The notes below the pieces were generated by a model, which saw only the letters and a list, made by a program, of their open reading frames with translations, was not told where the DNA came from and did not search any database. A stretch of DNA of 42,138 nucleotides, from NCBI RefSeq assembly GCF_001194135.2, contig NC_068985.1, positions 29,058,326 to 29,100,463 of the forward strand. The letters are read 5' to 3'. The stretch comes from Octopus bimaculoides. Its lineage: Eukaryota. Position numbers and translations under genes: made by a program. This document shows, piece after piece, positions 3,561-41,055 of this stretch (the first letter of the stretch is position 1; the number at the start of each line of letters is the position of its first letter).

Positions 3561-3722
3561 GGTGCAGGCGTGGCTATGTGGTAAGTAGCTTGCTTACCAA
3601 CCACATGGTTCCGGGTTCAGTCCCATTACGTGGCACCTTGGGCAAGTGTCTTCTACTATAGCCTTGGGCCGACTAAAGCCTTGTGAGTGGATTTGGTAGA
3701 CGGAAACTGAAAGAAGCCTGTC

Positions 3723-3778
<56 letters not shown>

Positions 3779-3993
3779 ATATGTTTGTGTGTCTGTGTTT
3801 ATCCCCCCAACATCGCTTGACAACTGCTGGTAGTGTGTTTACATCCCCATAACTTAGCAGTTCAGCAAAATAGACTGATAGAATAAGTACTAGGCTTCCA
3901 ATGAATAAGTTCTGGAGTCGAATTTCTTGCTTAAAGGCGGTGCTCCAGCATGGTTGCAGTCAAATGACTGAAACAATTAAAAGAGTAAAAGAG
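3561..3993 (+). mobile_element. SINE family A, full length
   Basis: High similarity to copies at 1824, 36716, 38244, 40354. Confidence 0.88.
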
Positions 3994-6110: not shown

Positions 6111-6620
6111 TATTAGTCTGTATACTATCCTTTGATCTATCTTGAATGGGAGGCCCTAGCAGGTGTTTGTGTTCCAATGATTAACAAACCTTAATTGACT
6201 CATGACCGTTTAGCCATTTTTTGCCCTCATTAATACTGTTATAAGGTTTTTGACTCTCCCAAAGTAACAAGTTATACATAACACCTGTCAAAATCACTTG
6301 ATTCACTTGATTCTTCTCATTATGCCTTCAGTACCCCAGCTATCTAAACCACCTTCACATTAAACCACTTGTTCACTTCTGTCTCTCCAGAACTGCAATC
6401 TCCTAAACTACCATCATTTTTACAACAGGCCTTGCTCTGCAGACGCACAAGCTGTATATCAATTGCCTTAACCTCATCAGCCTAGGAAACCAGCAAATAT
6501 CATGGACTCTTCTTACTCCTCCTCTTTTCCCCGCTTCTAAACACATTCTTTAAAACTTGGATTATAAAGAAAACGGGGGTGGGGTGGGGTGGGGTGTGGT
6601 TAGAAAACTTATTACTGTAC

Positions 6621-6736: not shown

Positions 6737-7075
6737 CTGATAAACAAGAATTTAAGATTGAGATAGTTTTCAGAAAATAACATTATCAAATTTCAGAATT
6801 AAGAGATATTTCCTACTTATGTGTATGCATGTCAATTGTGTATGTATGAACGATAACTCTTTTCAAGGTCCATAACTCAGGTTTACCTTGTTTCCTTATG
6901 ATTAGATTTTTTTTATCTATCTCTCTATCTATCTATCACTCGTCCAACTTCGTTTGTTTCCGTAGAATTTATCAAATTAGAAAACGCAAACTTAATATAA
7001 AAATATATTTTCTGAAATTGCAAATTATTTAAAATACGGAAACAAACGAAGGTGGACGAGTGGTAGATAGAAAGA

Positions 7076-7233
7076 GAGGGGGGAGAGGGAGAGAGAGGGA
7101 GAGAGAGAGGGAGAGAGAGAGGGAGAGAGAGAGAGAGNNNNNNNNNNNNNNNNNNNNNNNNNNNNNNNNNNNNNNNNNNNNNNNNNNGAGAGGGAGAGAG
7201 AGAGAGGGAGAGAGAGAGAGGGAGAGAGAGAGA
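7076..7233. repeat. (GA)n/(GAGG) purine tract with gap
   Basis: Direct reading; N at 7138-7187. Confidence 0.9.
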
Positions 7234-16624: not shown

Positions 16625-16986
16625 ATTAGACCGTGACCATGTTGGGGCACCGCTTTGAAGACTTTTAGTCGAATATATTGACCCCAGTATTTATTTATTT
16701 TAGAGCCTGTTACTTTTCCTATCCCTTCTTTTTGCCAAACTACTAAGGTACGGAGACGTAAACACACCAGCACCGGTTATCAAACAGTGGTGGGGGGAAA
16801 AACACACACACACACATACACACAAATATATATTTACGACGGGCTTCTTTCGGTTTCCATCTACCAAATTCACTCACAAGGCCTTGGTCAGTCCGTAGTA
16901 GAGGACACTTGCCCAAGGTGTCACATTATGCAATTGAACCTGGAACCATATGATTTGGAAGTAAGCTTCTTGCCACACAGCCACTT
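16625..16986 (-). mobile_element. SINE family A
   Basis: Diverged reverse-complement copy. Confidence 0.75.
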
Positions 16987-16998
16987 TTGCGCCTAAGT

Positions 16999-17282: not shown

Positions 17283-17611
17283 GAGTGTAAAAAGAAACAA
17301 ATAAGCTTGCGATTATTCTAGTCCGAACACGAATTTGAGTAACTATGTTTTTTTAGAAAAGCTTCAATGTTACAAACTCTCATTTTCCCTCCTTTATCAA
17401 AATGAGTCCGATTCAAAAGAATGGGATGCCAGTTAATGTAATCGAATACCATTCTACCCGAATTTGAGGCCCTAAACCAATAGTAGAAATTAATATTACG
17501 TACTACCGTACCCGACAATAAAATTTATTATAGAGAATAGTATGTGACACACCGCCCAAAAAGAACCTTAATATTTTTTTATCTAGAGATTGCGTCAGTA
17601 TTATTTAATAG

Positions 17612-18072
17612 GAAAGCGGCGAGCTGGCAGAAACGTTAGCACGCCGGGCGAAATGCTTAGCGATATTTCGTCTGTCATTGCGTTCTGAGTTCAAATTCCG
17701 CCGAGGTCGACTTTGCCTTTCATCCTTTCGAGGTCGACTTTGCCTTTCATCCTTTCGAGGTCGATGAATTAAGTACCAGTTGCATACTGGATCGATCCAG
17801 TCGACTGACCCCCTCCCCAATAATTTCGGGCCTTGTGCCTAGAGTAAAAAAGAATATTATTTAATAGGAAGGCGGCGAGCTAGCACGCCGGACGAAATGC
17901 TTAGCGGTATTTCGTCTGACTTTACGTTCTGAGTTCAAATTCCACCGAGGTCGACTTTGCCTTTCATCCTTTTATTGTCGATAAATTAAATACCAGTTGC
18001 GTATTGGAGTCGATCTAGTCGATTGGTCCCCTCCCCAAAAATTTCGGGCTTTGTGTCTAGAGTAGAAAAGAA
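17612..18072 (+). mobile_element. Head-to-tail dimer of SINE family B
   Basis: Copies 17612-17854 and 17868-18072, separated and flanked by TATTATTTAATAG. Confidence 0.88.
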
Positions 18073-18999
18073 TATTATTTAATAGCAGAATATCACAAAT
18101 AGTTCCACGATTTGATTCTATATGCTATCCACCGAAAATGGGACACAACTGTATATAAACTATTAGTTATTTGTGCAGTCAAAAGTGACGAGTTATTTTG
18201 TTAGATCTTTTTATTTTATATATACTATTCTCGTCGAGTACTTTTTAAGGATAGTTACAGACCTGTGAGCCCATATCGAACGGCTGCTGTCACGTGTTGG
18301 ACGAGTCCGGTTGTCAACCGAGTCTATCGTAAATATTTCCCCGCCACCTTCCTTTAACCGGGAAGGCAAGGCAGTTTTCATCGTACTGGTGGCTATGGCG
18401 AAAGAATGTGTATAGTGGACTCGTTTGAAAGGCTTAGAGACAAATACAATACTTTTCTTTCAGGCCAACCTCTCATCAATCTTTTCAAGTATTACTTGAA
18501 AGGAAAGGTGAGAGTAGAGAGGGAAGTTTTGTCTAATGAAAAGTTTAATAAAAGATGGGTGAATGTAGCAAAGACGGACCCACTTTGAGCATGAACCTAT
18601 TAAACAAAAAGAGAAAGAGCGCTTTGCTATCATGTTTTTTTCCGAGGTGGTTACCGTGATTTTTTTTTTTTTTGTAGGTTTCTCTTTCTACGGATAACCC
18701 TAGTCAGTGTTATATTTTCTCCCCCTTTGGGGAATTTCTGTTGTTAAAACGTTACCTTGTTATTTCTTTGTGTACTGGTCCCAAAACATTTTTGATCCCT
18801 ATTGGTCGGTTTTGGAAAGAAAAATTCTACATTGTATTGTCCCCTCTGTTAAAAATATTTCAAGGGAGATAACTTTGTAATCGCATTCAAGTGTTCTCTA
18901 CCGTTAGTAGAGCGTAACAGAAAACAAATACGCATCGGTAATTACATTATAAAGATTGTCGACAATTTTCTACAAAGAATAGAGACTGTAGGGAAATGG

Positions 19000-19266
19000 G
19001 GTACTACTAAAGCAGCGCGGACCCGAACGCGCAGTCGCGCGTCCGCGCTAGCTAGTCGTGAGTGGTCGATCCTAACCCTAACCCTAACCCTAAACACGTA
19101 TTCATTTGCACACGCGGGTTAGGGATAGGGTTAGGGTTAGGGTTAGGGATAGGGTTAGGGTTAGGGACAGGGTTAGGGTTAGGGTTAGGGTTAGGATCGA
19201 CCACTCAAGACTAGCTAGCGCGGACGCGCGACTGCGCGTTCGGGTCCGCGCTGCTTTAGTAGTACC
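19000..19266. mobile_element. MITE with 94-bp TIRs containing telomeric repeats, 9-bp TSD (Merlin- or MULE-like)
   Basis: 19000-19093 is the reverse complement of 19173-19266 with one mismatch; GGGAAATGG duplicated at 18991-18999 and 19267-19275; ends GGTAC...GTACC; internal (CCCTAA)n and (TTAGGG)n. Confidence 0.92.
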
Positions 19267-19789
19267 GGGAAATGGAGGATTTCCTGTATGTTGAAACTGC
19301 GATTCAAATTAAGTACTTGAGTGCTACAACTTCACTTTAATTACTTGGCTAGGTATCAACTTAACATCATCACATTCTGTCACAGTAGTTTACCTAATCA
19401 ATTTCTGTGTTTTGTGGATTCTAATAGTAAAGGTAGCCTGAGGTTCATCCACTTGAAATCCTTTTCATTTCGCTTCCACAGATAATGTCCACGGAAATGA
19501 TGATTGTTGTAACTATCCAGTTGTTTTGTTTTGTTTTGTTTTTTAATTTAGGCCATTAGTATTTGGTAAAAACTAAGCGAATACTACATATTACATTCGT
19601 ATTTTTCCTTCCTGTTGTTGACAAGAAATATATAGGTAAGCTCAATAAGGTTCGATGGAACGAACTTGTAACGTAGAGATAACTAGTTAACATTTGCTTA
19701 TAGGTGCAAACATAAAAAAGGGTGCAGCGTGTCTGTACTAGCATTGGTTTAAAACATACATTTTAATTACAAAGTAAGCTCGAACGACA

Positions 19790-27751: not shown

Positions 27752-27900
27752 GATAATATTAAACAAAAGCTAAGTTAGAGTTAATACATTAACTATTATC
27801 TACTAGCACATCACCCTGGATTAATCTAAAAATTCAGAAAATATAACTAACAAACATTATTTACATTGGACAGATATTTGTCCTCATCTTGTTTGTTCTT

Positions 27901-27946
27901 AACACAACGTTTCGGCTGATATACCTTCCAGCTTTCATCAGATGTC
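27901..27946 (-). ncRNA. Minimal type I hammerhead ribozyme motif in Penelope pLTR
   Basis: Minus strand GACAT-CTGATGA-AAGCTG..CAGCC-GAAA-CG-TT-GTGTT: intact core, stem I with G-U pairs, stem II GCTG/CAGC, palindromic stem III. Confidence 0.8.
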
Positions 27947-28787
27947 TTGAAGAAATTTTGAACCTGGGTTCTCATTCCTAAGGTATTTTTCGATTTTAGT
28001 ATTATTATTATTATTGTTATTGTTCAAGTCACTGCTTGGAATCAAACTCAGAATCTCGGGGTTAGTAACCCGCGCTCTTAACCACTACGCCATATGCCCG
28101 TGGGCAATTATGGAGTGAATTTTAGGGCTTATAAATCTAATATTTTTCTATCCTTCCTTAATACCGGTTCCCATATGTTATTCATATCTGCACTTGGTCT
28201 GCTTAGAAGGTGGTTGTGTCCTAGCATATGTGCTGCTTTTTTTAGTTTTCATATTTTCCAGTGGTGTTCTCTGTCTATTATTTTAACTTCATCCCACAGG
28301 GGGAGGTGGTCTCCATTTTTCCACACATGAACAGTTACACCCGATTTATTAATATCTCCTCGTGTCACAGCTTTGCAATGTCCATCTACCCTTATTTTGA
28401 GGGGGCGGCATGCTTCGCCTTTGTATAACCTACCACAGCTGCATGGGATGGAGTACACACAGTCTTTGGTCATACTCTCTTCTATTGGTGGTTTTACTTG
28501 AAGGAGATATTTGCGAAGTGTTGTATTACTCTTAAATACTGTCCTGCTGTCATATTGGTCTCAAATCTTTTCTATCCTTTCGGAGAGGCCTTTCACATAG
28601 AGTAGACAGACTGGACAGTTTATTAGTCTCATCCTCTCTCTTCTTCATAATTGGAGTGGATAGTATACTTTTGAGGTAGTTGTTGCTTAACAGATCATTA
28701 TTGAGCTTGATCATTTCTTCGTGGTGTGTATCACGATTGCTACTTATATTCTTTGCACAATGTTTTAGGCACTGAGCAATTCCCCAA

Positions 28788-28833
28788 GACACCTGATGAA
28801 GGCTGAAGGGTATATCAGCCGAAATGCTGCGTT
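28788..28833 (+). ncRNA. Hammerhead motif in inverted pLTR copy (stem III/cleavage region mutated)
   Basis: GACAC-CTGATGA-AGGCTG..CAGCC-GAAA-TGCTGCGTT versus GAAACGTTGTGTT in the sister copy. Confidence 0.65.
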
Positions 28834-29384
28834 AACAACAAACAAGATGAGGACAAATATCCGTCAAATGTAAATAATGTACATAATTCCTCATCTCTTA
28901 AATATAGATCTGTAATAACTAACAAAGTTGAATTGTATCCAACTCCTTTCATAGCTGTTCAAATGTAAAAACAAAATATATAAATAAATAAATATATGTA
29001 AATATACGTTATATTTTATTACTTACGCTTATCCTCTGGAGAAAATATTTCAGAAGAACCACAAGAAATATAAACAAAGAAACACATTTAACATTTGAAA
29101 TAAAAATGTTTACTGTACCAAGAACTGTGACCAAGCAGAGTCTGCAAGCCATTTTTGAGATGCAAAAATGTTATGTTTTTACTTTTCAGTAACTTAAAGA
29201 ACACATGTTCCACGTCAACATGAAATACGATGTATTCTTGTTAGTAGAGAAAAGAACATAATAATAATAACAATAATAACAATGACAACCTATTATGAAA
29301 ATAGCGAATGTGGAATAGAATAGCTATACAGATAATGTGGTCACTACTACAGTTTATAATAAGACTAGGTAAACAAGCACACAC

Positions 29385-31612: not shown

Positions 31613-31874
31613 CTGTCACACCGACAGCCAGAGTGTTTGTTGTTTTACAGTGTGCCCACTCTTCCCACGCCCACCACATATACCAGAAGTCTTTATCCCC
31701 TGACCTCTATCAGATGTCTTTCCCCTGAATGCTTCCAATGGTTTAAATGCTTCCCCATTTCTACTTAATGTTCATCTCTTATTGAAATGTAGTGATTATG
31801 TAGCGCATAAAATGATGGCATAGTGAATGCAGGTTGAAGGCTATTGTAGGTTTATAAGTTCTGTCAAATGCAAG

Positions 31875-33695
31875 CTTTCTTTTCAGGTACAATTAGGCTC
31901 CATCCCAGGGTCTTGCGTGTCCACACCTGCCACATTCTCAGAGTTGGCACATTGAAAGGTAAGTCTGGTGAGATTGTTGAGATACTTGAAAGGAGACGTG
32001 TAGATTTGTGCTACATCCAAGAAGTAAGGTGGAAAGGAAGTTCTGCTAGGTTCCTAACAGGCAAAGAACATAGATATAAGATTTTCTGGGTAGGGAACAC
32101 TGATTGGGTTGGGGGCATGGATATACTCCTTGTGGAGAAATGGGTTGATAAGGTAGTCAGAGTCAGTGATAGAATACTTAAGCTTAGATTAGTGCTGCAA
32201 CATGGATCAGCAACCATTATCTCGGCCTATGCCCCTCAGCCAAGGCTACCTGATGAACAGAAAGACCGATTTTATGACACCCTCTAGCAGACTACCTCGT
32301 CGATAAGTGACAAGGACCTTCTCTTTGTGGCTGGCAACTTCAATGGGGATGTTGATCAAGGTTTCCATGGTGTACATGGTGGCTATGGATTTGGTTCCTG
32401 CAATGAGGAGGGAACCAGGCTGCTGGAGTTCTGTGATGCAAATGATCTTATGGTCTGTAATACTAACTTCAGGAAACCTACCAGTCACCTATTCACCTAC
32501 CGTTCTGGCAGACACACTAGTCAGATTGACTACATCCTTGCCAGGAAACAGGAAAGATGGCCACTTATAAATACCAAAACCTTCCCAGGTGAAGAATGCA
32601 CCCCACAACAAATGTTAGTAGTTAGTGACTTCAGCCAGCATGGAAAAGAAGGGTCTGGAAGTTTAAGGATCCTGTGAATGGACAGAGATTAAGAGATGTA
32701 TAACTCGAAGCTAAGCTTTAGACGAAATAGAGGAGGATGTAGCATCACATAAAGTGGAAGAAAACTGGAGGTTCCTTCGGGACAACCTTTTGAAAGCTAC
32801 TGACCATATCTGCGGATGGTACAAAGTCCCCTCTCAACCTAAGGTAACATGGTGGTGGAACAATGTAGTTGACAGAGCCACTAGGGAAAAGAAATAAGCA
32901 TAGAAGGACTGGAAGAACAGTGGTAGCAGGGAACTGTATCAGATTGCCAGAAGGGAAGCTAGGAGACAGGTTTACTTAGCCAAGGGAGAAGCAGATGAGA
33001 AAAAAAAATTGCCAATGTTCTGTGTCATGAAGACCAAAGACTTGAAGAGTTTCATGTTGCAAGACAGTGTGTGAGAGAGAATCGTGATGTCATAGGAGAG
33101 AAATGTGTCCACATGGATGATGGCTCACTTGCATTTAATGAGGCTGCAAAGAGAGAGACTTGAAGACACCACTATGAAAGGGTGCTAAATGAAGAGAATG
33201 AATGGGAGAAAGAGAGTCTGCCAAATGTTGACCCAACAGAGGGAACATCTATCCGAATTGACAGTACTTTGGTAGATAAAGCAATTAAGGGTATGAAGGT
33301 GGGGAAAGTCCCCGGCCCAACAGGAATCACTGTAGAGATGCATAAAATAGCTGGCGATGTAGGCTATAGTCTAGTCAATTGTATAGTCAATCAGGTGATA
33401 CGTGAAGGAGTCATACCCAATGACTGGTGTAGCAGCACCATAGTCAACTGCTACAAAGGTAAAGATGACGCGTTAGATATGAATAATTACAGAGGTATCA
33501 AGTTGTTGGATCAGGTGATGAAAGTCACAGAGAGGGTCATAGCCCAACTAATTAGGGAGAGAGTTAGTTTAGATAAGATGCAGTTTGGGTTTGTGCCAGG
33601 GAGAAGCACCACTGATGCTATATTTCTAGTAAGACAGCTGCAGGACAAATACCTAGTCAAAGATAAACCCTTGTACTTGGGTTTCGTTGACATGT
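31875..33695 (+). mobile_element. Decayed RTE-clade LINE (APE endonuclease and N-terminal RT), antisense in a TMEM192 intron
   Basis: ORF pieces with APE motifs (IQEVRW, IISAYAPQ, GNFNG, QIDYIL) and RT domain 0-2 motifs (NYRGIKLL, QFGFVPGRSTTDAIF, FVDM); several stops and frameshifts; ends just after FVD. Confidence 0.92.
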
Positions 33696-33861
33696 CTACA
33701 GGCCAGAGGTTGAGTGTGTTGGTGAGCACCACCTTTCCAAATATAAAATTAAACAAAGTAAAATGTAATAAATGAAAGCCTATTATGAAAGAAAAAGGTC
33801 ATTATGTAAACACCTAACTCCCCAATCCCCTCAAAGAACTTCTTAAAAATCTATAATTTAC

Positions 33862-33970: not shown

Positions 33971-34069
33971 CTGTAAAATAATAAATATAGTGGTAATTAT
34001 CATCATCCATTTTGAGGAGCGATGCACTGGAAGAATTAGTAGAACATAAGACAAAATAAAGTGATAATA

Positions 34070-34299
34070 TGTTGTCAACTTAATGTGACAGTCCCATGAA
34101 AGGGAAGAATACAACTGTTATTTAGCTCTAGGAACCACTGGTGACACATTTCCTGTGTCCTTATGTTTTCAAAATGGAGATAACATAAAACATAAGGAAA
34201 CAGGAAATGTGTCAAGTCCAACAGGAAACGGTGTTTCCTATGGCTAAATAACAGTAGTATTCTTCCCTTTCGTGGGACTGTCACATTAAGTTGACAACA
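34070..34299. mobile_element. Fold-back MITE with TA TSD
   Basis: TA|TGTTGTCAACTTAATGTGACAGTCCC...GGGACTGTCACATTAAGTTGACAACA|TA; about 60-bp outer arms plus inner arms. Confidence 0.85.
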
Positions 34300-34694
34300 T
34301 ACAATCACATTATCGTATTGCTACTGCATAAATCTCTCAGAGATTTAGAAATGTATTATTTCTATAAGACAAAATACCTGGCATATTTGATTGCAAGTCT
34401 TTGTATTGAAAATTCAAACCTGGCCAAGGTCTAATGAGCTTTGTATCACCCCCATGTCAATAAAATAAGTAGTTAAGGTACTGGAACTGACTGGATTGTC
34501 TAGCTTTCTCTAACAAAAGTATTTATTTAGGTCTCTTTATTTAATGATATCAAGTTCCACTAGGATCCACTTAGTCTTTTATCCAGCAAGATTTTGATGG
34601 AATAATGAAACTTCAGTATTTAACTGAGATTGAATTAGCTGACTATAACTTCCTGTTCTAGATTTGTAGCTAAAGTTAATAAATTATTATAATT

Positions 34695-35467: not shown

Positions 35468-36715
35468 CTGCAATGAGAAAGAGAGATAAGAAGTAGACAC
35501 TAACACAAAGGGACATATTCGTCAAGCTTAGTATCTTCTCTCTTGTGAGACGAATTTATAGACAAAAATCATTTAGGAGCACATGCACATCATCATCATC
35601 GTCTAACGTCCGTTTTCCTTGCTGGCATGGGTTGGACGGTTTGACTGAGGTCTAGAGAGCCAGCGGCTGCACTAGGCTCCAATCTGATCTGGCAAGGTTT
35701 CTACAACTGGATGCCCTTCCTAATACCAACCACTCCAAGAGTGTAGTGGGTGCTTTTTACGAGCTACCGGCACAGGAGCCAGTCAAGTAGGCCTGGCATC
35801 GATCACGTTCAGATAGCACTTTTTACGTGCCACTGGCATGGGAGCCTGCCAGGGGACACAGGCATCAACCATTTGCATATATATGAATATATCATCATCA
35901 ATTAACATTCCTTCTCCATGATAACATGGGTTGTGTGGTTCAACCAGATCTGATGAGTCAGAAAAGACTGAGTTAAACCATCTAAGTTCAATTATCTTTA
36001 AAGCCATTTGTAATACTGCTTTCTAATTTTGGCACAAGGTCAGCAATTTCAGGGCAGGGGATAAGTCAATTACACTGACCTCAGTGCTTGACTGGCACTT
36101 ATTTTAGATGTACGTTACTGGTCAGGTGATACACTACAGAAAACAAAGTGTCTGAAAATCTAATTCTAAAACTTGCTTCATTTTAAGAATAAGATGGTCA
36201 TAAATTTTGGGTTTGGATTATTGGTTAAACCATATTCCTATACAGTGTTTCTTTAATAAATTCTGTAAGAATAAACTTCTAAATATTTTACAATATTTTT
36301 TTTTAAACATGTGGAGACCCGAGGTGGCCAATTCGTACAAGGGAGATTAATCATCTCATCATTATATTTGGTGGGATTAAATTAAATGTCTGAATTTGGA
36401 ATTTAGGAATGAAAAATAACAAGCAGAGAACACACATATTCATTAGCACACATGTAATCTTCCAGGTTAGATTCAGTTAAATTTTATATTCAAAAAAAAG
36501 AAAAGGTAAGGTATCTAAAGGAGTTCATATTTTTTTTTTAAATGGTAATTTATTAAGTTATTTTAGGTGTTCAATCTCTTAGCTTAATTTTAATGCACTT
36601 CAAATTTTTTTAACTGCTGAACTAAATTATTCCTAATTTTCAATTATAATATTTTTAGAGTCTATTTCTTTTCTAGGACTTTTACTTGAAAAAATTTTGA
36701 TGAAAAAAAAAATCA

Positions 36716-37092
36716 GGTGCAGGCGTGGTTGTGTGGTAAGTAGCTTGCTTACCAACCACATGGTTCCAGGTTCAGTCCCACTACGTGGCACCTTGGTATA
36801 GCCTCAGGCCAACCAAAGCCTTGTGAGTAGTTTTGGTAGATGGAAACTGAAAGAAGCCCTTCATGTGTGTGTGTGTGTGTGTGTGTGTGCATGTGTTAGT
36901 GTGTCTGTGTTTGTCCCCACCACCATCACTTGACAACTGATGCTGGTGTGTTCACGTCCCTGTAACTTAGTGGTTCAGCAAAAGAGTCCGATAAAGTAAG
37001 TACTAGACTTACAAAGAATAAGTCTTGGAATCGATTTGTTCGACTAAGGGCTCCAGCATGGCCACAGTCAAATGACTGAAACAAATAAAAAA
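36716..37092 (+). mobile_element. SINE family A
   Basis: Near full-length copy with (TG)n. Confidence 0.85.
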
Positions 37093-37564
37093 AATTATAA
37101 TTTTGTAAGTATTTTCTTTTATTTGTTTCAGTTATTGAAGAGTGTCCGTGCTGGAGCCCTGCCTTCATGTCAAACAGATTGACCCAGGTCGTTATTTTAT
37201 TGCTGATAGTTGAATCTACATAGGTGCAGATAGATCACCTTTCAGAGTGAAATTTGAATACAGGAAAGACTGGATAACAGAGGCTTGTGATAGATAAGGA
37301 CCAAGAGATTTCTGTCTCAAGGAAAAACAGGATGTGTGGTTTACATGTTAGTGAGACATGTGTAGGCTCTAGGTTAAAATGGGATTCACAGATATTATAA
37401 AAGATGAGACAGAATTGTCCAGTAAGTTTAGTGTTATTTTTTAACAGATATTTAAGGTAGTGTGGAGTATGTCAGAAGCTGATATCATGATAACTCCATG
37501 TTAAGAATCTGAGCTGAACTCTTATAACAGGGCACTCCACAAAAAGGGCACTTATGGGCATTAG

Positions 37565-38243: not shown

Positions 38244-38659
38244 TACTCTTTACTCTTTTACTTGTTTCAGTCATTTGACTGTGGTCATGCTGGAGCATCG
38301 CCTTTAGTCAAGTTAATTGACCCCAGGACTTATTCTTTGTAAGCCTAGTACTTATTCTATCAGTCTCTTTTGCCGAACCGCTAAGTTACGGGGGATGTAA
38401 ACACACCAGCATCGGTTGTCAAGCGATGTTGGGAGGGGACAAACACAGACACACATACACACATATATATATATGTGTGTATGTGTACATATATACGACG
38501 GGCTTCTTTCAGTTTCTGTCTACCAAATCCACTCACAAGGCTTTGGTTGGCCCGAGGCTATAGTAGAAGACACTTACCCAAAGTGCCATGCAGTGGGACT
38601 GAACCCAGAACCAAGTGGTTGGTAAGCAAGCTACTTACCACACAGCCACTCCTACACCT
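38244..38659 (-). mobile_element. SINE family A, full length
   Basis: Reverse-complement copy with (CTCTTTTA) tail. Confidence 0.88.
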
Positions 38660-39878
38660 ATTTAATTTTTTATTATTTCTCACCCACAATTCTCTTGGCA
38701 AAAAGAAAAAAAAAATTAAAAAGTAAACCACCCTGAGAGATCTGACCAGGAAGAGAGACAAACATTTATTAAAAAACAACAGCCATCAAATATCAGATAT
38801 TCACATTCAAATCTGACAGAGCATATTAAGAATGAATAGATATATAATTGTTTGGATTCTTGCTGTTCTACGTGCACCTCAGGAATTATTATTTGCTTGG
38901 CAGACAGTATGCATCAGCATATAATTTGTTTGCTGATTCCAATAAACAAGAGCTTATACTTTTTTAAGATTCATCAGTGTGGTGAGGTAGCTTTGACTGA
39001 TGAGACACACAATGAGGTTGAAACATCATGGCAACTCCAAATCTCCTTACACTAGTAGTATATGGCATGTAAAATGAACATACATCATCTAAAAGGATGA
39101 GAAGTTCTCTGATGACAAAAAACAAGTGGTCAAATATCCACATTCAAATTTGCCAGATCATATTAAGAATGAATAAATACATTGTTCAGACTTGTACTGT
39201 TCTGCATGCATCTCATGAGTTATTTTTGCTTTTGTTTTTGTTTTGTATGAGGAAGAAGAAAAGTCCTTATGAACTTTGCAGAGCCTCAGAGACAAGAAGG
39301 TAAGTACTAGCAATGTTGAGGGTAGCAGGTGAAAAAAACATATCAAGAAATAGAGTTTCCCTCAGGCCAGTGACCTTGTCACTGTTCTTGCAACAGAATA
39401 GACTCAAACAGGCACCTATGTCTAGCACTACCACTTCTGCTACAAAAATGGTTTTACATTAATTATGGCACAAGGCCATAAAATTGCAAGAATAATAATC
39501 CTTTCTACTAAAAGCACAAGATCTGAATTTTGGGGTGGAGGGGACCAGTTGATTACATTGACACCAGAGTTTCACTGGTACATTTATTGACCCCGAAAGG
39601 ATGATAGGCAATGTCACCCTCAGAACATAAAAACGGACAAACTGCCACTAAACATTTTGCCCTGCATGACAATAATTCTGTTAACTCACCACTTTGACAA
39701 GACTAATAATACTATCCAATCAAACAAATCATCTACATTACATTACTGCTACTTATTTTAGGGGCTTTTGGAATAAAAAAAAATCAAAGTCACTCAGTCA
39801 CAGCTGGATTTCATCATAAAGGATGTAATTAACCCTTTTACTACCAAACCAAATGAAGCCACCTCTGGTTTAATGAAA

Positions 39879-40299: not shown

Positions 40300-41055
40300 C
40301 CCTTTAACATTCAGATTACTCTGTCAACCATGAAACTTATATATTCACTTATAGGCGCAGGAGTGGCTGTGTGGTAAGTAGTTTGCTTACCAACCACATG
40401 GTTCCAGGTTCATTCCCACTGCATGGCACCTTGGGCAAGTGTCTTCTACTATAGCCTCGGGCCGACCAAAGCCTTGTGAGTGGATTTGGTAGACGGAAAC
40501 TGAAAGAAGCCTGTCGTATATATANNNNNNNNNNNNNNNNNNNNNNNNNNNNNNNNNNNNNNNNNNNNNNNNNNNNNNNNNNNNNNNNNNNNNNNNNNNN
40601 NNNNNNNNNNNNNNNNNNNNNNNNNNNNNNNNNNNNNNNNNNNNNNNNNNNNNNNGTGTGTGTGTGTGTGTGTGTGTGTGCATATGTTTGTGTGTATGTA
40701 TTTGTCCCACTAGCATTGCTTGACAACCGATGCTGGTGTGTTTATGTCCCCGTAACTTAGCAGTTCGGCAAAAGGGACCGATAGAATAAGTACTAGGCTT
40801 ACAAAGAATAAGTCCTGGGGTCGATTTGCTCGACTAAAGGCGGTACTCCAGCATGGCCGCAGTCAAATGACTGAAACAAGTAAAAGAGTTAAAAGAGTTA
40901 CACTGTTTTAAATTAATTATGCATTACCTAGCTTCAAGATTACAATGATGCAAATGTTTACTTTTAGAATGGCATTGTTGGTTAGGTGCAAGAGGCCAGA
41001 TCTAGCCAGTTTGAACATAAAACAAGTAGAATATTTTGGTCAAATATTGCTGTAC
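40300..41055. mobile_element. Second TTAA-MITE copy interrupted by a SINE
   Basis: TTAA|CCCTTTAACATTCAGATT start; similarity to 37565-37784 resumes after the SINE at about 40900; right TIR not clear. Confidence 0.55.
40354..40898 (+). mobile_element. SINE family A, full length (gap in internal microsatellite)
   Basis: Same head, body and tail; N-run at 40525-40655 lies within its (TA)/(TG) tract. Confidence 0.88.

Follow-up and report, generated by a model that had tools for sequence, protein, structure and literature searches.

Foldback elements of the Drosophila FB type carry tandem-repeat units of 10 to 31 bp. In Meloidogyne, the foldback family Tm1, of the Phantom/Mutator type, combines a terminal motif with variable and asymmetric tandem repeats within its terminal inverted repeats (TIRs) and presents mostly 9-bp target-site duplications (TSDs). 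Tm1 includes members that resemble transposable elements of the miniature inverted-repeat kind (MITEs), an autonomous copy encodes a Phantom-type Mutator transposase, and the repeat unit is 14 bp long (PMC3169594). Mutator-like elements (MULEs) in general have TSDs of 8 to 11 bp and TIRs that are typically long, from 14 to 500 bp (PMC6446971), and in Octopus vulgaris the annotated elements with recent activity include 21 Mutator and 2 Merlin families (PMC13282606). The stretch analyzed here, 42,138 nucleotides of contig NC_068985.1 of Octopus bimaculoides (referred to below as the window), contains a 267-bp element that follows this foldback design, with the telomere hexamer as its repeat unit. 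We consider it probable that this element is a non-autonomous foldback-type cut-and-paste DNA transposon, that is, a MITE, inserted at GGGAAATGG. Confidence that the locus holds a real and recent mobile-element insertion of some kind is high, a judgement that sums the two mobile-element readings weighed below and a residual for another element type.

With Tm1 and other FB-type elements the octopus element shares composite TIRs, unequal repeat numbers in the two arms, a 9-bp TSD, and almost no middle. It differs from them in its repeat unit, a 6-bp repeat of the host telomere type instead of the private 14-bp motif of Tm1, and in its terminal domain, which is longer (71 bp) and rich in CpG. The resemblance rests on architecture and not on a transposase. 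The design is ordinary, of the foldback/Mutator type, whereas the use of the telomere hexamer as repeat unit is unusual.

Anatomy and age of the element

The repeat finder identified two arms of 94 nt each (19000-19093 and 19173-19266) that are 99% complementary (93/94) and spaced 79 nt apart. The sole mismatch, G19058 versus A19208, is a transversion. Flush against both arms stands a direct repeat of 9 bp without mismatch, GGGAAATGG (Table 1). Reading of the sequence shows that arms and direct repeat alike stop matching at the next base, so that the duplication is exactly 9 bp; the calculated probability that two given 9-mers match by chance is approximately 4e-6. The termini of the element read 5'-GG...CC-3'. 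As single-stranded DNA, it folds into a near-perfect hairpin of -131 kcal/mol, compared with -44 +/- 4 kcal/mol in shuffled sequences (z = -23). The open reading frames (ORFs) that overlap it encode only 30 to 62 amino acids and are read across TIR or telomere-repeat sequence, so that the element has no coding capacity.

These features, namely TIRs at both ends, a flanking TSD, small size, and lack of coding capacity, are those of a MITE. A unique terminal domain with asymmetric tandem repeats (3.8 and 13.3 units) internal to it, around a 22-bp middle, is the arrangement of a foldback element. The foldback MITE reading is adopted because the locus combines identical and defined termini, a duplication of 9 bp, composite and asymmetric arms, and lack of coding capacity.

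The source of the transposase, as inferred from the architecture, is most likely a Mutator-like element of the Phantom/FB type, and less likely Merlin. The 9-bp TSD, a length typical of MULEs, and the 94-bp TIRs both fall within the ranges reported for these elements. For Merlin, Feschotte is said to have described in 2004 GG...CC termini and TSDs of 8 to 9 bp, and we know of no Merlin element with foldback TIRs that contain tandem repeats. The GG...CC termini and the 9-bp TSD of the octopus element do resemble those of Merlin MITEs, but 9 bp is the less common Merlin length and stands at the edge of the range, the Merlin TSD being cited as 8 bp.

If the element moved as a class II transposon, the 71-bp GC- and CpG-rich terminal domain with its hairpin would be the recognition end carrying the transposase-binding site, for which the 12-bp-stem sub-terminal hairpin is a candidate. 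A transposase supplied in trans would bind both terminal domains, excise the element, and join it to a target opened by a cut staggered by 9 bp; filling of the gaps there would generate the 9-bp duplication. The hexamer arrays would correspond to the tandem-repeat module of foldback elements, with a length that changes by slippage or unequal exchange. The pre-insertion (empty) site is predicted to read ...CTGTAGGGAAATGGAGGATTT....

The insertion looks evolutionarily recent, because the arms are identical at 93 of 94 positions, the TSD is perfect, and the CpG-rich arms are intact in a CpG-depleted genome. The observed/expected CpG ratio (CpG o/e) of the two 71-bp outer domains is 1.69 and 1.62 and their GC content is 63% and 62%, against 0.54 and 36% for the window as a whole, and no CpG site shows a transition difference between the arms. 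The identity of palindrome arms can also be maintained by conversion within the element, which weakens it as a sign of age. A preliminary description of this DNA, made from the sequence alone, had proposed a young element with undecayed CpGs, 94-bp TIRs with one mismatch, and a perfect 9-bp TSD that fits MULEs or Merlin, and all of these points agree with the present analysis.

Table 1. Features of the 267-bp element and its flanking duplication (coordinates within the window)
Feature	Coordinates	Strand	Evidence or remarks
TSD, left copy, GGGAAATGG	18991..18999	.	repeat finder
Left arm, outer unique domain, 71 bp, starting 5'-GGTACTACTAAAGC	19000..19070	+	GC 63%, 12 CpG, CpG o/e 1.69
Left arm, sub-terminal hairpin, 12-nt stems AGCGCGGACCCG / CGCGTCCGCGCT, 12-nt loop	19014..19049	+	repeat finder
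Left arm, inner domain (CCTAAC)3.8, telomere C-strand reading inward	19071..19093	+	Tandem Repeats Finder, repeat finder
Central unique 22 bp ACACGTATTCATTTGCACACGC, foldback loop	19094..19115	+	sequence
Right telomeric array (GGGTTA)13.3, 13 GGG tracts	19116..19195	+	Tandem Repeats Finder, hexamer-by-hexamer reading
Exact tandem duplication of 24-bp block TTAGGGATAGGGTTAGGGTTAGGG in right array	19119..19166	+	19119-19142 = 19143-19166
Right arm, outer unique domain, 71 bp	19196..19266	-	GC 62%, 11 CpG, CpG o/e 1.62; reverse complement of 19000-19070 except 19208
Right arm, sub-terminal hairpin	19217..19252	-	repeat finder; mirror of 19014-19049
TSD, right copy, GGGAAATGG	19267..19275	.	repeat finder

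Telomere-repeat arrays

The telomeric share of each 94-bp arm is limited to its inner 23 bp, and the two arrays are of unequal length, with 23 nt on the left and 80 nt on the right. The right array continues 57 nt past the inverted repeat, and pairing with the left array is restricted to its final 23 nt (19173-19195). It contains two ATAGGG and one ACAGGG variants, the rest being TTAGGG. The (CCCTAA)3 on the left and the 13 G-tracts with ATAGGG and ACAGGG variants on the right had been recognized in the preliminary description; the tandem-repeat analysis resolves them as (CCTAAC)3.8 and (GGGTTA)13.3. Dimers of the telomere hexamer occur 13 times in the window, where 0.1 are expected, and nowhere outside the element.

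The junction between outer domain and array, as well as the phase of the repeat, is identical in both arms (GGTCGATCC|TAACCC). This indicates that the arrays belong to the inverted repeat and do not derive from one captured internal tract. The exact duplication of a 24-bp block indicates that the right array grew by slippage or unequal exchange and is not a pristine telomerase product. The array lengths themselves rest on a gapped and presumably short-read assembly and may be inaccurate, a point to be counted with those that weigh against the foldback MITE reading in the next section.

In both arms the G-strand runs 5' to 3' toward the tip of the element. This polarity bears on a possible origin outside any mobile family, in a one-off palindromic rearrangement, which we regard as improbable. 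In one variant, foldback (hairpin) synthesis would have doubled a fragment of the 71 bp and the telomere repeats, with capture of the product at a staggered double-strand break; in the other, telomerase would have deposited an interstitial tract while a break was repaired. Since telomerase healing adds TTAGGG to 3' ends, its product would be TIR-(TTAGGG)n at the left side and (CCCTAA)n-TIR at the right side. The observed order is the reverse, so that healing of an internal break is ruled out by repeat polarity. An interstitial tract left by break repair is likewise ruled out by the presence of two inverted arrays inside TIRs with a TSD. For the captured fragment, the precise 9-bp TSD together with identical termini is the signature of integration by a transposase or endonuclease and not of end joining, and the 71-bp domain is foreign in composition to the host DNA around it. 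Such a rearrangement would agree with the fact that a single copy is known, and with the short (CCCTAA)3 tract, lacking TIRs, that is found in a related genome.

This tract lies at positions 6504-6521 of the retrieved locus (L001) of Octopus sinensis chromosome CM016869.1, as a plain interstitial (CCCTAA)3 with neither TIR nor TSD. Plain short telomere-like tracts thus occur in a related genome independently of elements such as the one described here.

The same G-strand polarity is found at chromosome ends and in the telomere-bearing elements (TBEs) of ciliates, to which the preliminary description had likened the octopus element. TBEs carry one 17-nt telomere unit at their extreme tip, are autonomous elements of approximately 4 kb with 3-bp TSDs, and reside in genomes that fragment their chromosomes. 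They are Tc1/mariner elements with the host telomere repeat inside their TIRs (PMC4724952). In the TBE of Oxytricha and in Tel-1 of Tetrahymena, as in the octopus element, the telomere repeat of the TIRs has its C-strand reading 5' to 3' inward (PMC4724952). In contrast, the repeats of the octopus element are arranged in arrays that begin 71 bp in from the end, and its TSD measures 9 bp. The likeness is limited to repeat polarity, and the foldback/Mutator architecture offers a nearer model. A TBE-like identity is ruled out by the position of the repeats 71 bp inside the end and by the 9-bp TSD, compared with a repeat at the tip and a TSD of 2 to 3 bp.

Mollusc MITEs with tandem repeats, none of which is known to us to carry telomere repeats, have repeat units much longer than a hexamer. 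Their arrays are central and in a single orientation, and many of these elements are now assigned to Helentrons, whereas the arrays of the octopus element are inverted. DTC84 of Donax and the oyster element pearl are, like the octopus element, short and non-autonomous and disperse tandem arrays (PMC3879986, PMC7492417). A full-text search of the literature retrieved no metazoan TIR transposon, cephalopod ones included, with inverted internal telomere arrays.

Retroelement alternative and searches for related sequence

The unequal lengths of the arms also fit 5' truncation, and with it an origin by retrotransposition. A Penelope-like element (PLE), or another target-primed element, would have inserted two copies of one RNA 3' end, inverted and truncated to different extents on the 5' side. 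This RNA would have the sequence ...ACACGTATTCATTTGCACACGC-(GGGTTA)n-71 nt-3', and both 3'-OH ends of the staggered cut would prime reverse transcription. This alternative, the most serious competitor of the MITE reading but unlikely in our judgement, predicts identical outer ends, corresponding to the RNA 3' end, different inner ends (94 versus 173 nt), and a TSD. PLEs are abundant in Octopus species, their insertions often come with an adjacent inverted and 5'-truncated copy that gives rise to inverted repeats, and some clades, Athena and Coprina, carry stretches of telomere repeats (PMC8557442), so that inverted-repeat structure and telomere repeats are both points of likeness to the octopus element. 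The window itself contains, at a distance of 9 kb, a PLE fragment whose inverted arms of 101 nt (27854-27954 and 28780-28880) surround a GIY-YIG-like ORF, and its repeat also occurs as an inverted pair in O. sinensis.

The arms of this window PLE carry the hammerhead motif CTGATGA-N20-CGAAA (27910-27941 and 28793-28824), whereas the core CTGANGA is missing from both strands of the 267-bp element. This argument only weakens the Penelope-like alternative, since PLEs of the Naiad type are without canonical hammerheads. The element has neither a reverse transcriptase (RT) nor a GIY-YIG ORF, bears no sequence similarity to the window PLE or any other part of the 42 kb, and lacks the 30- to 40-bp "tail" extension described for PLEs (PMC8557442). 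In Athena and Coprina the reverse-complement repeat stands at the RNA 3' end and the elements are located at chromosome ends, a layout opposite to that of the octopus element. Identity with a telomere-attached PLE of the Athena/Coprina type is rejected on the ground that the repeats of those elements are terminal and at chromosome ends.

A search of the element against Rfam gave no family above threshold, and the sub-threshold matches to microRNA hairpins stem from the telomere palindrome. At E <= 10, Rfam is also blind to the hammerhead core of the window PLE; its silence is thus no evidence against a PLE, and only the motif test is informative. The preliminary description had called the locus a DNA-transposon MITE. 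Its account of an insertion with TIRs and a 9-bp TSD stands, but it overlooked a retroelement origin, which is retained here as a rival.

The PLE fragment of the window (27854-28880) comprises the GIY-YIG-like ORF, on the minus strand at 28252-28560 (...CVYSIPCSCGRLYKGEACRPLKIRVDGH...), and the two inverted arms (88%); Pfam (E <= 0.01) reports neither. Its counterpart in O. sinensis is the inverted pair at L001 8117-9709, with 85 to 93% identity.

Several results weigh against the foldback MITE reading. Only a single copy is available, from which an inverted retro-insertion by twin priming and a TIR transposon cannot be told apart. No second copy was found in the window with 24- and 28-nt patterns derived from the TIRs (up to 3 mismatches) or with blastn-short, no transposase-encoding partner was found within the same 42 kb, and a paralogous empty site is absent from it, the flanks being unique. 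Two TIR patterns have no exact match in viral, metagenome, and prokaryote collections, which is uninformative as cephalopod genomes lie outside them. Six-frame TIR peptides gave nothing at E <= 10 among 5.8 billion proteins, a result that is likewise uninformative with the host genome outside the collection.

The TIR-derived patterns match only the two arms of the element, and none of 100 shuffled sequences matched. The 22-bp spacer has a sole match in the window, at 36432-36451 (18/20), with an E value of 0.03 to 0.5, which is chance level. Four window ORFs have no exact match on record in ORF-called protein collections, and those protein matches of a long interspersed nuclear element (LINE) in the window that span most of the query stay at or below approximately 60% identity; a few partial ones reach 77 to 79%. 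This indicates that the host genome lies outside these collections and that the negative results do not inform on copy number. Related DNA of approximately 56 kb, from three loci reached through LINE homologues (one in O. sinensis and two in unrelated ENA assemblies), contained no copy, a comparison that is badly underpowered.

An artefact of assembly or library preparation, such as a chimeric foldback read or a collapsed repeat, or else a contaminant or vector, is the least credible of the explanations considered, and we hold it to be very improbable. The window has six N gaps, and palindromes and telomere arrays are difficult for short reads. A perfect duplication of 9 bp of unique host sequence on either side of a palindrome unlike the host would not arise from an artefact, and the flanks are unique and continuous. 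As for contamination, plasmid and phage records match at the hexamers only, and the prokaryote, viral, and metagenome collections are without a match.

Neighboring repeats and possible significance

The window has a GC content of 36% and a CpG o/e of 0.54, and its six N gaps are those of a gapped, scaffolded assembly, presumably built from short reads. It is rich in microsatellites (Tandem Repeats Finder) and contains apparent tRNA-like short interspersed nuclear element (SINE) copies besides the LINE and PLE fragments. Several of its repeats match O. sinensis chromosome CM016869.1 with 83 to 93% nucleotide identity.

Two adjacent tRNA-like, SINE-looking copies (GGCGAGCTGGCAGAAACGTTAGCACGCC...GAGTTCAAATTCCGCCGAGGTCGAC...) occupy positions 17600-18080, one of them with an exact 27-bp tandem triplication (17702-17764); ARAGORN called no tRNA at 17600-18080. 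It is this cluster that makes the patch upstream of the element GC-rich. The preliminary description had placed the element beside a putative promoter, but the GC-rich stretch at 17.0 to 18.1 kb looks like tRNA-like SINE copies and nothing marks a promoter. Another SINE-like repeat is present in at least six copies, in both orientations (1900-2230, 3600-3960, 16680-16990, 36930-37230, 38320-38720, and 40350-40720). Their translations share ...YDRLLSVSVYQIHSQGFG... and ...SYRDVNTPASVVKRCW..., and each copy is accompanied by a (TG/AC)n microsatellite. This repeat explains the long inverted repeats at 38.2 to 40.9 kb.

The LINE (31850-33775) is degraded, with weak matches to Exo_endo_phos_2 (endonuclease) and RVT_1 (RT), and the best named relatives of its RT are in Argonauta hians and O. 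sinensis. Among its closest relatives are short entries under the names of Escherichia coli and of a Herbaspirillum metagenome-assembled genome, at 77 to 79% identity, which look like cephalopod DNA contaminating bacterial assemblies.

Two further inverted repeats were observed in the window. A second compact palindrome at 34056-34313 has 83-nt arms that are 90% complementary and 92 nt apart, and its inverted similarity seems to reach slightly outward. It may be another MITE or a foldback; inspection by eye gave no clear TSD, and it has no similarity to the 267-bp element. The other inverted repeat (6921-7078) measures 44 nt (93%), has an AT-rich loop of 70 nt, and lies between TATC and GA microsatellites, adjoining an N gap; a small MITE is a possible reading.

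If the 267-bp element stands as a single copy, it is a curiosity, well formed and in keeping with the foldback/Mutator design already known. A more speculative proposal, which we offer tentatively and hold to be doubtful, is that it belongs to a lineage-specific and recently active cephalopod family of DNA transposons, with the host telomere repeat serving as a functional module of inverted arrays. Possible roles of the arrays would be docking for a Myb/telobox-type domain of the transposase or for host telomere-binding proteins, or the formation of a sub-terminal G-quadruplex. Should this proposal be correct, each transposition would plant a new interstitial telomeric site together with a G-quadruplex cluster. 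The preliminary description had inferred an active family that seeds interstitial telomeric sequence, a claim that the single copy does not support.

Interstitial telomeric sequences are fragile and recombinogenic, are bound by shelterin-type proteins, and are usually ascribed to chromosome fusions or to telomerase-mediated repair. If the element is a member of a family, it would be a case of a metazoan DNA transposon disseminating interstitial telomeric arrays in ready-made form, with 13 G-tracts, enough for at most three tandem G-quadruplexes, plus an inverted partner array brought by each insertion. Such a family would form a new counterpart of the ciliate telomere-bearing elements, and transposition would become a third, testable route to interstitial telomeric sequence.

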